Origin: Dimorphilus gyrociliatus
Taxonomy: Eukaryota; Animalia; Annelida
Reading direction: 5' to 3'
Assembly: GCA_904063045.1 (NCBI GenBank)
Contig: CAJFCJ010000006.1
Span: 2,098,946 to 2,162,945 of the forward strand
DNA length: 64,000 bases
Shown here: in pieces, positions 3,021 through 11,577 of the stretch
How the letters are laid out: each line of letters opens with the position of its first letter
Numbering within the stretch: the first letter of the stretch is position 1
Translations under genes and position numbers: made by a program
Notes under the pieces: model-generated
Database searches by the model: none
Told to the model about the DNA's origin: nothing
What the model saw: only the letters and a program-made list of their open reading frames with translations

Positions 3021-4511
3021 GCATATATACTTTTCGTGTTTACAAGAATAAATGTAATAATACAGTTTATGTGTTTGCAATAATTAACAGAAAAATGACT
3101 ACTTATTATTATTTTCATTGAACTAAGTGTTTTATTGAAAACCGAAGTGCAACAGTGTTGAAAATAATTAATTTCATTTATTGCCAAGTGCCCATCTTAC
3201 AACATATTTTCATAATAGAACAACATTGCTCTTCGGGTTCCTTGTGAAATTCTTGATGTAAATTTACCCTAAATCGAAATTTATCGAATTATATATAGCA
3301 AGTAAGAAGTAGGTGATTGTCACTAGGGGTCCGAAGAAAAAATGCTTACGATAAATAAGAAAAATGTCATATTTTTATAGTCGCTAAAGGGAGCAAGTTT
3401 TAAATTAACCAATTGGTATATTTATGTTAAAGATTACCTAAAGCAGTTGGGAAATGGTTGTAATTAAGGCTTGTTTGTAATATGTTGAAAAAATAGGTAA
3501 GCAGTTGTTCAAACAATAATAGACTGGCATAAAAAACTACATCTCTGTTCCTAGTAGGAAAATTTTTCTCTATTTCTGAGAGGAATTATTGATAAATGCC
3601 TAAATAGGGAACTGTAACTTAAGTACATGTGCTATACCGGATTATTCTCTAGAAGTCATTCTCTAGATATTGTTTCGTAGAGAAATAATTTTATAGTTGA
3701 TATTAAATGTTTAAATATGTCTAATAATAGTTTAAATCTCTAGTGAAAATTTACCTTATATCTATTTCTTTTTCGATATACTTTTTAATTTATTCGTAAA
3801 TTCTCTCGTAAATATCAGTCATTTTTTTTTTCTATTTCAAGTATGCTATGTCGTGATTCTACTGTGTATAGTTCTGGATTCTCGGAATACTATCAAGTAG
3901 ATCTAGACAGGTGGGGCTCCTTATAATTTTCTTGGCCATTTCTTACTCTTCTCAATTTACCATTAGCGTACATTTCGTCAAACCAGCTGTATACTTTATC
4001 AAGCTCTTCTGAAAGATTTCACCTTATTGCTTTAAGAACCTAGAAAATGACTGCTAGAAATTGACTCTCCTAGTTAGTGTACTTTTACATAATGTACAGT
4101 AACAATATAGCTATGTAGTGTGATCCATGTTAAGATATAAATATCAAAGTATATATTGAAGAGAGGATAAATAGAGGACACGTCATTAATTCTGTGATTT
4201 TTAAATTGTAAGATGTGAAGAAGTATTATTCGAACCCCTAGATAGTAAATGTCATCTATACAATTTCTATATACTATATATATATACTGTATATATAGAA
4301 GTACATACAAATATACAAAGAAGCAACGTAAGACGATCAGTAACCGAAGCGCCGTCTGCGAAAAAACAACAAAACGATTTTTTTCATTTTTGTGCTAGTT
4401 ATTATTATTCCATCTGCATACAACACTCAAGATAATTTTTTGACACTGCACTAGGGAATAACTCATAATGGATATTTAATAATAACATGCAGAAAAATGT
4501 GAAACGGTCGC

Positions 4512-4753
4512 TTACTGCTCAGCCAGGCCAGCGATATCTCCAGTTGAGGCGACAACGAGCATTTTTTTCGGGGCCTTATCAGTTTTCGGTACCCGAATAA
4601 CTCGAAGTGTATTAGTATGACCCGAACCTTGACGCCATCCAGTAACGATAACAACCGTTGATCCACCCTTAACTGCACCTAATTTCCATCCGTGCTCTAC
4701 TGCCCAAGTAATTCGTGAGTCCATATCTTCTACCCATTCAGGATTTCGAAGTT
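4512..4753 (-). CDS. PK: Pyruvate kinase alternative last exon B (distal)
   Basis: Acceptor ...TTAAATTAG|AA is phase 1. Encodes [16 protein letters not shown]...[19 protein letters not shown] with the canonical GWRxGSG loop; ATTAAA at 4475-4480. Confidence 0.92.
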
Positions 4754-7700
4754 CTAATTTAAGAAGAAACACAATAAGATTAAAGACATAAATTTTATCA
4801 ATATCAACTCAACTATACAAAAGTTATATCAATTTGATAATTAAATAGCTAATAATTTCTCTTTATACTTTTACACCAAAACAATAACCTAATAGAATAT
4901 TATATATTTTCAATCAACCTTTCCTATAATATTAATTAATAATAAGACTATTGCTCTAAGGAATTTCAATAGAAACTTAGTCTATTAAAAGCTTTATAGG
5001 AGTATTTATTAGTAATATTCTCATTAAACAATAATTTCTAGATGGTATTATAATACAAATACAAGGTTCAACTTAATTCTAAATACTAAAGCTTTGATTA
5101 ATTTAATAATAAGTTAAGTAGTAATTTAGATTATGAATAAAAAAGAATAAAATTAACCCAAGTTAACTAGATTATACTACCATAAATATTATTTTTCAGG
5201 CATATGCTTTGAAATATCAGTCAATAGTACGTCCTTGAATGTAATTATACGACATGTATTGGTAAAACCTGATCCCGCATTATTTCCAGTTACCAAGATA
5301 AGATGTGCACTTTTAGCCTCATCTGATAAACGATTTGGTAAAAATTGCCTATATTCTGCAAATTCTAACGCCAAAGCTAAACGTTTGTCTACTTCATTTT
5401 CCCAATCGATTCTATTCGACGCTAGATTTATATAGATTAGGAGATATTTGAAAAATTTATGAATCGTTCTCTTCAAGAAGAGAAAGTGGAAAGGAAGAGA
5501 ACGATCTTCAATCTTTAACCTAGTATTCTCTTAAATATATCCCTAAATTGACAAATGATGTAAATCTCTTTCGACCTAATTTAACATTGTCGAAAGGAAG
5601 CGATGAGAGTAAAACTAGGCGATTGGTTGTCGTATCTTATATACCTGATCAAGTTTTTGTTTCGTTTTTTTTTTACTTACCTGTGTAATGAATTGGGAAA
5701 ATTCCACGATATAAATGTAGCTGTCTGGCTACGCGATCGTCTCTTGTTACAGCTATTATCGGACATCTAGGTCTGTAAGCAGCTAACAGTTGTGCAGAAC
5801 GTCCAGTTGATGTGATTACGACAATGCAACTTGCTAAACAATTAACACTGGCTTCGACGGCCGACAAAGCAGTTGTGTGAGTAATATCAGTTGGTCTCGG
5901 AGTTAACTGTCTTAGCTCTTCAAACAACTGCTTATGATAAACAGCGGCTTCCGCCTCTCTTGCAATATTATGCATAGTACGAACTGATTCCAAAGGATAT
6001 GCACCCTTTGCCGTCTCCCCAGACAACATTACACAATCAGCTCCATCCAAAATTGCGTTTGCAACGTCTGAACTCTCAGCTCTGGTGGGTCTTGGCTTTT
6101 TAACCATAGATTCCAACATTTGAGTTGCACAAATAACTGGTTTACCAGCTCTGTTACACCTTCCAATCATCATTTTTTGGGCGAGGAACACTTTCTCCGT
6201 TGGGATTTCAATACCTAATTAAATAGAAAAGAATTTTTATTTCTATTAACATACTATATCACGTATAAGAATTTTTTATCAATTTAGAATGTTAAGAATA
6301 AAATAATATACTATTTGACGTTGATATAATTATTAAAGATTTTCTTTTTTTTTCTTTTTTATATGATTATGGTATATTATTTGTTAATTTTTTTCCTACC
6401 TAAATCTCCTCTAGCAACCATTATACCGTCGGCTTGTTCTAGAATTTCTTCGAATCTCTTTACACCTTCATGATTTTCGATTTTGGCAATAATTTTAATG
6501 TGTTTTCCCCGATCTCCTAGAATCTTACGAATTTCTCTGATACCGTTACCAGATCTTATGAATGAAGCGAAAATCATATCAACATTTTGTTCAACACCAA
6601 AGAGTAAGTCCTTCTTGTCCTTTTCAGATACAGGTGGAAGATCGACTGGTGTTCCTGGAAGATTGCATCCTTTTTTCGATCCCAGTAAGCCACCATTTTC
6701 AATTCTACAGGTTAATGACTTGTCATCCTTACTAATAACTTTCAAAGACATTAAACCATCGTCGATATAAATATAACGGTCCTCTTCAAGTACTGACGTT
6801 ATATTCTCATAATCGACATAGAGTATATTCTCATCACCGATTTCTGCGTAAGCTTTATCTGTAGTTAAGATAATCGTTTCTCCCTCTTTTAACTCAATTT
6901 CAGCTGTTGGGCCTCCCTTCAGTAGACCTGTTCTAATTTCAGGTCCTTTAGTGTCTAGAGCAATAGCGACAGTACGATCGCGTATCTGATAATAAAAATA
7001 ATTTCTTTTAATTAAACAATTAAAAATAACAAAAAGAGAATATCGACTAAGATTTCTTGAAAATACTTAGTTCAATAATAGAGAGAAAGCTTTTAAAGTC
7101 TTATCTATGTAAGGCATTCCTTAATCAAATATCAAGTTAATTTCTAGCGATAAATATAGACCATTTATGAAAATTCATTATACAATAATACAAAAAATAT
7201 CAAGATCTAACGAAAATTTTAAGCAATTGTGATATTTATTATCTACAGTTTTTAATATAAAGCCCGTATCTGTTAGAGTGTAATATACCTTTCGTAATTT
7301 TGTTTACTTTTTATTGTTTTTTTTTGTTTGTTTGTTTTTGTGAGATATTTAAAGAATCCGTTTCATAAAACTGTTCTTATTGTAAAAAAAATTTACTATA
7401 ATTCATTAGCTTTAATGTAGGTTAATAATAATAAGGAATACTCTCTTTAACAGTCTAACCTCATTATTAGCTTTTCGGACATTCTCGATGGTGCCGCGAT
7501 GATAATCGTAGTCTCCATGCGAAAAATTCATTCGAGCGATGTTCATTCCTGCTCTAATCATCTCTTTTAGCATTTCAACGCTTCTACATGCAGGGCCAAT
7601 AGTACAGATAACTCCGCTCATTCGTTGTACATGAGGTGCTGAATCAATGTCCAATTCACACATAGATTCCAAATGAGTTGATGCATAAGCTGCAATAAGT

Positions 7701-8376: not shown

Positions 8377-9264
8377 CTAACAATTACATGTTTGGGGGTA
8401 ATTTTCCATTTGGATTCCCTCTTTGACAAATTTGGATGGATTTTTGGTGGTGGGATCTACAAAAATGTATCACATTAATAAAGTATTAGAAAGTAACCTA
8501 CACTGGAACTGGACGATCCACCAGGTTTTCCTCCTATCATTTGAGCCATAGCTAGAATAAAAAAAATATATAATTATAGAGATTTAATTATTAATTTACA
8601 AATTCTGCAATGTAAAGAGTATTCAAGGTCAGACGGTGTGTTAGTAAAGTCAATACTCTTTTGCAAATATATTCCAGACAGGATAAAAATATCTGATACT
8701 AAAAATAACACTTATTAAACTTGACTTTAAAAGTCTCATTTGATTTAATTGATTTTTTTTTTAAGAAATTTTTATTGTCGTTTTTCTATAGTGTGATAAT
8801 TTCTTGAGCAATTTTTTTATTAATATTTTTTTTACTTGCATAAAAATAATAATTAATAAAATTATTTATAATATTTAATCAATACATGCATAACCTAAAA
8901 GAGTGTATTTTTTATTAAGATAAAATTCTTGCATTATTCGTAAAAATGACTCATTATCGCCCAATGGAATATATTTTTTGCTCTACTTTAAGAGATGGTA
9001 ATGTTTTGAATATTCTCTTACGAAAGGAAAAGTAGATAACAAAGAAACTTTAGCACCAATATTATCAAATAAGCGTACCTTATCGGCCTGTTTTGGGTCA
9101 AATTGGTTCAATGTTACTTGCAAAGTCGATAAAAGGACAATTAGACAAACGTTCACTGTATCTGAGAAAGCAGAAAATTTTTCAGACGCGCCATCTATCT
9201 CCACAGCTTGTTTTATCTATATCCAAATCTAAAATTACGCAATAATCTTACTCACTTTTTCCAT
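8377..9264 (-). CDS. Unrecognised spliced ORF (orfX), up to ~155 aa, ending ...ENYPQTCNC*
   Basis: Candidate exons 9264-9256, 9216-9079, 8982-8895, 8698-8600, 8551-8498, 8456-8377 join through GT-AG sites in consistent phases (0,0,1,1,1) with no stop; AATAAA just after the stop. The 5' exons are uncertain (39-nt first intron). Confidence 0.55.
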
Positions 9265-10120: not shown

Positions 10121-10724
10121 TACTTTTCGGCTACCCTTCAACATTAAATGTTCGAACAGGAAGTGTTGAAACACAGTGGTGACCTCATTGATTATTTGTA
10201 AAATTAGAGAATTTTATATCTTGAATACTTAATTAAGACTGAATGAAAGCAATTTAAACACCAGAATAAAGACATTGCCATATTAATAGAAAGTTTATAC
10301 TAAAACTTTTTTTGATTTTTCATTATATTGAACATACCAAAGGTCGATAATAGGTAGTTTACACACGAAATACTTATTATAAACAATAACAACAATTTTG
10401 CTAAATTGCAATGTAAATCAAATGGCAAAAAATGATTTGTAAAGAAAATTATCGAATCATTAATGTTATTATGTAAATTGATTAATGCACTATTCGACCA
10501 ATTTCTCAATTGCGATATCAAATGTGGCGTCCTCTAGTGTATATTGTGAAATTTTTTCGATTTCAAGTTGGAATGATTAAGAGTTTCCAATGGTAGTGTG
10601 CAATTTCTTTATGTTAATGACAAGAATATACATATATAAAGAGTAAAAGATTGTAAGTTTTAATTTAAGACTAGCTATTGCAACACCTTCATCAACCTAT
10701 ATCTATTTGCTAAAACCAAAGCCT

Positions 10725-11577
10725 ATGGGACAAAAGAGTTCAAAACAGTTTAACAGTGAAGAGTTAAATACAGAATTGTTGCAGGAGATGAAAGAAAATA
10801 CACATTTCAAATCGAAAGAGATAAAAGAATGGCATGATAAATTTAAGAAAGATTTTCCATCTGGAATAATTAAGAGACACGAATTTAGGAAAATATATAT
10901 GGAATTAACCAATAAGGTTTGTAATTTAAATATGAAACAATCTTATCATCAAATAATATTTTGACTTAGTATGCTTCGTTTGTTATTACTTCTTTTATAC
11001 TGTATGTATATATTAATATACATATATACAGTATATATATCAAATAACTTCTGCAGTTGTTACTTCCTTATAGAAAATTATGAATGATGATGATAGATAA
11101 ATAGCTCGTGAAACATTAATAACTATTTATTATGACTATTTCATTAATAAAGTAAAATTCCTAATAGATTATAATGCTAAACTAATTTTCTTTCTTATTA
11201 TCTAGAAAAGCGAAGAGCTGGCTGATTATGTTTTTGACGCTTACGATCAAGATAAAAATGGTGTCATAGACTTTAAAGAGTTTATGATTACTTTAAGTAT
11301 TACATGCCGCGGTGATATAAAGGAAAAGCTTAAATGGGTATTCGATATGTACGATACAGACGGCAGCAGTTACTTAAGTAAAAGCGAAGTTATCAAAGTT
11401 TTAGAAGTCATCTTTAGAATGAAAGGAAATGATAGAGTTGAAGCAACAGCTTTTCTTCAAACTGTCGATATATTCAAAAAATTAGATAAAGATAAGGATG
11501 GCTACATTACCAAAGAGGAATTTTGCCGTATTGCCACAAGAGAAAGAGAAATAATTAACATTTTAAATGCTATTTAA
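10725..11577 (+). CDS. Neuronal calcium sensor family EF-hand protein (neurocalcin/hippocalcin/NCS-like)
   Basis: Exons 10725-10916 and 11206-11577 (phase 0). MGQKSS myristoylation motif; EF loops DQDKNGVIDFKE, DTDGSSYLSKSE, DKDKDGYITKEE; EKLKWVFDMYD. Confidence 0.92.

Follow-up and report, generated by a model that had tools for sequence, protein, structure and literature searches.

A duplicated last coding exon under purifying selection in the pyruvate kinase gene of the annelid Dimorphilus gyrociliatus

In vertebrates, the choice between the PKM1 and PKM2 exons figures in textbooks as a control point of metabolism, and it is usually regarded as a vertebrate feature. The two isoforms arise from mutually exclusive exons 9 and 10 of PKM and differ in a homologous segment that touches both the FBP site and the subunit interface. 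More generally, substitution isoforms derived from tandem exon duplication are encoded by adjacent, homologous exons that match in phase, are similar in length and are both under purifying selection; the pairs collected in surveys are reportedly, for the most part, ancient, internal and mutually exclusive exons of vertebrates. Among the listed titles and abstracts of a literature search, none dealt with an invertebrate pyruvate kinase whose last exon is duplicated or alternative.

In this work, we have analyzed a 64,000-nt stretch of the Dimorphilus gyrociliatus genome (hereafter the window), whose minus strand carries a complete pyruvate kinase (PK) gene with two versions of its last coding exon, a divergent exon A and a canonical exon B. 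Like PKM1/M2, this gene has a tandem-duplicated, same-phase exon within the allosteric C domain of one PK gene, and like the isoforms attributed to tandem exon duplication, the pair is homologous, neighbouring and equal in phase, with both copies under purifying selection. There are also differences. The window gene duplicates its last exon, which corresponds to PKM residues ~476-531 and includes W482, R489, the loop 514-522 and the last strands, whereas the segment encoded by PKM exons 9 and 10 carries K433. Each copy in the window has its own stop, so that the predicted choice is between C-termini; and, unlike the surveyed vertebrate pairs, this one is terminal and apparently young or lineage-restricted. 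We consider it likely that the locus is a single PK gene with a tandem duplication of the last coding exon, in which splicing from the donor at 5681 would choose either A or B.

The splice sites of the gene were read directly from the sequence, and the resulting features are collected in Table 1. Pfam places PF00224 on the three coding exons from the barrel start to exon 3 and PF02887 on the end of exon 3 and again on exon B, so that the barrel and the alpha/beta C domain of a pyruvate kinase lie in one polypeptide (E-values down to 6e-49 for PF00224, 1.7e-20 for PF02887 in exon 3 and 1.9e-8 in exon B). The model is also collinear with P0083, a 572-aa protein whose spliced mRNA contig (L015) comes from a related lineage, and it was this collinearity that exposed the start-codon exon and a probable 5'UTR exon. 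The domain matches and the collinearity together bear out the pyruvate kinase identity proposed in the first-pass annotation. Exon 3 ends in phase 1 (...CAT TAC ACA G/gtaagt, with the donor GT at 5680-5679). The same annotation had placed two duplicated last exons behind this donor, each with a matching phase-1 acceptor and its own stop, and all of its coordinates hold: A and B are adjacent, share the splice phase and have intact reading frames.

Table 1. Features of the pyruvate kinase gene and its two last coding exons in the window (positions of the whole stretch)
Feature	Position	Strand	Evidence
Probable 5'UTR exon (extent approximate)	9079..9117	-	97% match to L015 bases 1-39
Start-codon exon, encodes MAQMIGGKPGGSSSSS	8502..8551	-	ATG 8549-8547; acceptor AG 8553-8552; donor GT 8501-8500; matches start of L015/P0083
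Coding exon, PK barrel start, 103 codons	7460..7768	-	PF00224 1.1e-20; matches L015 bases 99-398
Coding exon, PK barrel and B domain	6400..6985	-	PF00224 6e-49; splice sites read; matches L015
Coding exon 3, barrel end and first half of C (allosteric) domain	5681..6214	-	PF00224 6e-39; PF02887 1.7e-20
Conserved intronic patch, ~70 nt, upstream of exon A	5514..5583	-	77% identity to L001 3537-3606
Exon A, divergent duplicate of last coding exon	5189..5421	-	acceptor AG 5423-5422; stop 5191-5189; homology to exon B
Exon B, canonical last coding exon	4512..4753	-	acceptor AG 4755-4754; stop 4514-4512; PF02887; PKM alignment
3'UTR after exon B	4290..4511	-	~97% identity to L001; also in L015

The two acceptors read AG/C at 5421 and AG/A at 4753. 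Counting the split first codon, exon A encodes 77 residues and exon B 80, the latter including a 24-aa C-terminal tail. The two peptides are homologous by BLASTP (31% identity, E 1e-8, one 7-residue gap), which confirms that the second exon is a duplicate, and no further copy of either was found in the 64,000-nt window. Exon B is the canonical version, as had been proposed: in addition to its match to Pfam PK_C, its alignment to human PKM covers residues 481-531 and is followed by 24 extra residues. The canonical lophotrochozoan and annelid PKs that we compared (P0082-P0091, Helobdella, Paralvinella) match exon B and all upstream exons of the window gene, including the extension after RV..VP that is common to many annelid PKs. 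Exon A by itself has no Pfam match at E<=0.1, but every one of its phmmer alignments to solved PKs (E 1e-3 to 0.4) spans the homologous residues. In the best of these solved-structure alignments (E 1e-3), W6 and R13 of the exon A peptide, numbered without the split first codon, align to PKM W482 and R489, and N46-N47-A48 align to W515-R516-P517; the GSGFTNT motif is retained. The W-x6-R pair and the GSG-TNT motif that the first-pass annotation saw in exon A are thus in the sequence, and so are the changed loop and the 7-aa insertion that it described. The position of the first of the two asparagines is occupied by Trp in 31 of 33 invertebrate PK fragments returned by a word search with exon 3, with an adjacent basic residue in 29 of the 33, and the spacer, 23-24 residues long in all 33 fragments, measures 30 in exon A. 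The acceptor of exon A has a poorer pyrimidine tract than that of exon B in both lineages in which we could compare them (judged by eye), a difference that fits a regulated or minor exon.

The last exon would encode the helix that bears W482 and R489, the FBP lid together with the loop and the strand that precede it, and the final strand, whose pairing partner lies on the other side of the C-C interface. We take W482, R489 and the loop 514-522 to be the FBP pocket, as in PKM2 structures. Joining the donor at 5681 to the distal acceptor at 4753 gives the canonical 572-aa enzyme, whereas the proximal and weaker-looking acceptor at 5421 would yield an enzyme of 569 aa whose last 77 residues differ. 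This predicted isoform A would keep the GSGFTNT turn as well as the W and R that contact phosphate, lose the W-R pair of the lid, carry seven additional residues in the loop ahead of the penultimate strand and exchange the annelid-type tail for a different one of 16 residues. Because the equivalents of W482 and R489 are kept while the W515-R516 pair is lost and the loop is lengthened, the A form would most likely be activated by FBP less strongly or not at all, or differ in tetramer contacts or stability. The two forms would make a natural 'loop-swap' pair for studying the part that the 514-522 lid and the C-terminal strands play in FBP activation and in the stability of the tetramer.

The word search with exon 3 found a 166-aa genomic ORF (P0001) that is 99% identical to it, on contigs of a sister lineage (L001-L004, L013, L014) from six runs in two studies; these contigs look like unspliced DNA and are identical wherever they overlap L001. 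Between the window and L001, exon 3 has 86% nucleotide identity with no gaps and 99% amino-acid identity. Exon A is kept in L001 at 3741-3979 with its AG acceptor, the same phase and an open frame; there is no indel across the first 67 codons, and the stop comes two codons later than in the window. It forms an island of identity of 0.74-0.88 within flanks of 0.14-0.5, in an intron that is otherwise unalignable, and the residues kept in both lineages are those that define the PK fold, W-x6-R and TG...GxGFTNT.

We estimated selection on this single species pair by the method of Nei and Gojobori (NG86), with binomial P values. For exon A, dN is 0.152 and dS 1.01 (omega 0.15, P 1.5e-6), which is close to exon B as a whole (dN 0.110, dS 0.855, omega 0.13, P 2.8e-8); both copies are thus under purifying selection in this pair. 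Within exon B, the 55-codon core is the more constrained part (dN 0.059, dS 1.007, omega 0.06, P 4.8e-9) and the 24-codon tail the less constrained (dN 0.239, dS 0.572, omega 0.42, P 0.10), while exon 3 hardly changes at the protein level (dN 0.005, dS 1.207, omega 0.004, P 1.4e-42). The differences in exon A fall 14, 7 and 31 on codon positions 1, 2 and 3. Over the ungapped core, the predicted frame has an omega of 0.12 and no stops; four of the five other frames have omega >1 and 8-10 stop-containing codons, and the antisense frame that shares wobble positions with exon A has an omega of 0.23 and two stop-containing codons. Permuting the substituted columns 2000 times never gave an omega as low as the observed one. 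Neutral dN/dS in exon A, which the first-pass annotation had named beforehand as an observation that would overturn its reading, is rejected for this species pair, with an omega of 0.12-0.15 at P ~1e-6 that is specific to the frame. The comparison shows exon A to be protein-coding sequence under purifying selection in two lineages and makes a strong evolutionary case that the exon is functional. The duplication predates the split of the window and L001 lineages (dS ~1). The locus also illustrates cleanly that a single contig from a sister lineage can be enough to tell a selected exon from a relic.

In both lineages, exon A is free of in-frame Met codons until its last few residues. With no start codon of its own, exon A requires joining to an upstream coding exon in phase 1 to be translated, and the donor of exon 3 offers such a junction; we infer exon 3 to be its upstream partner. 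Exon A very likely gives a second form of the enzyme, one that is probably minor or conditionally used. Direct evidence from transcripts concerns the other form: the junction of exon 3 to exon B (donor 5681 to 4753) is present in the spliced contig of the related lineage (L015/P0083), in support of the use of exon B that the first-pass annotation had predicted. This Dimorphilus-like mRNA contig is the sole transcript found from these lineages, and that it is of the B form counts against the preferred reading, as do the failure of exon A alone to reach the Pfam PK_C threshold and the fact that selection was estimated from a single species pair.

The searches for the A form were negative. A word search with exon A in a collection of 5.8 billion proteins, which holds hardly any transcripts of these lineages, found no A-form protein at 42-133 aa; the same collection gave none at 94-297 aa when the end of exon 3 was included, and none at 185-588 aa. 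An exhaustive search of 1.84 billion representatives found no relatives of exon A; its single match (P0081) is a translated tandem repeat and was set aside. Scanning the JGI metagenomes with an exon A alignment yielded nothing that was confirmed. Exact look-ups were made of small ORFs that an ORF caller could place on A-form mRNAs: the 70-aa ORF of exon B and an antisense ORF in the window's 3'UTR returned no record, and the sister-lineage ORF led only to unspliced contigs with the same sequence as L001. With so few transcripts of these lineages in the collection, the absence of A-form sequences is weak evidence and argues at most against A as the dominant isoform.

Granted that exon A is coding and used, its transcripts might still share one poly(A) site with those of exon B, either because transcripts spliced at the proximal acceptor extend through exon B to its conserved 3'UTR or because exon A is a cassette spliced to exon B. 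This possibility, a sub-case of the two-exon splice choice that differs from it only at the 3' end, is one that we think somewhat unlikely. The flank after exon A shows no conservation between the window and L001, as compared with ~97% for the UTR after exon B, and a GT lies past the exon A stop in both lineages (8 nt in the window, 35 nt in L001), inside a shared 10-mer. However, a shared 10-mer also arises in 427 of 2000 shuffles and lacks significance, and we have dropped the conserved donor that a cassette would use. An AATAAA or ATTAAA lies 84-284 nt past the exon A stop in both lineages, as expected if exon A had a 3' end of its own, although such poly(A) signals may be chance in DNA this AT-rich.

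Over ~225 nt, the 3'UTR after exon B is ~97% identical between the window and L001 (4920-5145) although the dS of the gene is ~1; it is more conserved than the coding exons and is found in a third lineage as well (L015 1770-1891). Rfam assigns it to no family (the only match, mir-297, is at E 0.17), it shows no excess folding energy (z -0.3), and its conservation probably reflects dense binding sites for proteins or miRNAs.

The intron between exon 3 and exon A is unaligned between the window and L001 except for the ~70-nt patch listed in Table 1, whose core is TAAATTAGGTC...ATTTACA..ATTTGTCAATTTA. A conserved intronic patch upstream of an exon is typical of regulated exons, and we regard this one as a candidate splicing-control element. 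A second arrangement did not survive comparison: a 35-nt, 77% complementary pair (4787-4821 and 5427-5461) lies just upstream of the acceptors of exons B and A and would loop out exon A, but it is not mirrored in L001 and is probably chance in AT-rich DNA.

Such signs of RNA-level constraint lend some weight to the idea that exon A is conserved for a reason other than its protein, as an RNA element in splicing or 3'-end formation or as a poison exon that lowers PK output: a conserved intronic patch lies nearby, the ultra-conserved 3'UTR of exon B points to heavy constraint on the RNA of this gene, and the in-frame stop of an included exon could serve as a switch. Nevertheless, substitutions that gather at third positions and amino acids that are conserved in one frame only are a signature of translation rather than of an RNA element, and the residues kept are exactly those that define the PK fold, so that we think a non-protein role very improbable. 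That exon A is instead a dead duplicate, a pseudo-exon never translated whose open frame is left over, is a view for which one could cite the lack of an A-form transcript or protein in our searches, a divergence too great for Pfam PK_C and the loss of the near-invariant Trp of the FBP loop, but to which we give hardly any credence, as neutral sequence at dS ~1 would not retain 67 codons free of indels and stops together with an AG acceptor and its phase, the low omega is significant, unmatched in permutation and specific to the predicted frame, and exon A stands as an island of conservation within an unalignable intron.

We return, then, to the two coding last exons and to how widely they are found. 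The duplicated exon that the first-pass annotation proposed to look for in related genomes is present in the sister lineage (L001) and absent from four other lophotrochozoan PK loci (L005, L006, L011, L012), each of which has a single last exon of the B type and, unlike the window gene, no second one up to 10 kb downstream. In a fifth locus (L007), no last exon at all was found within 10 kb, and three more (L008-L010) are too short to serve as a close outgroup. The Dimorphilus-like sequence stands alone among annelids in a PK tree. One candidate outgroup, L011/P0082, looked close at its N-terminus, but it groups with the PK of the leech Helobdella in the tree. Among the loci sampled, which include no close outgroup, the exon A duplication is seen only in the window's worm lineage and its sister lineage and is apparently young or lineage-restricted. 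That it arose independently of PKM1/M2, as had been suggested, is made reasonable by the different exon involved and by its absence from the four other lophotrochozoan loci.

A fuller version of that suggestion is that this annelid lineage has independently evolved a switch in the style of PKM1/M2, with an A isoform that would be FBP-independent or differently regulated in particular tissues, in particular stages or in the dwarf male. We put this forward tentatively and think it somewhat unlikely in so complete a form. If true, it would be a second, convergent animal route to splicing-controlled regulation of glycolysis. Such a second case would show that control of glycolytic flux at the level of splicing has evolved repeatedly through duplicated pieces of the allosteric domain, here with a different part of the same FBP pocket being swapped.

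Several further observations concern the relatives of the window gene. In public runs, the window's animal has at least two other related lineages, with coding identities of 81-86% to the window and 86-92% to one another; the sister-lineage contigs (L001, with L002-L004, L013 and L014) and L015 suggest a species complex that would be useful for selection tests across this genome. In the leech-like relative (L011), an extra intron interrupts the sequence that corresponds to the last exon (10596-10667 and 10909-11013), and several introns elsewhere were read through in frame by the ORF caller. Finally, the C-termini of many annelid-type PKs (P0082, P0084, P0087, P0091, P0002, P0005) run 25-40 residues past the usual RV..VP end and have in common a basic K-K-[IV]-x-[IV]-[VL]-S stretch, often with FF at the end; the 24-aa tail of exon B is a short version of this extension.
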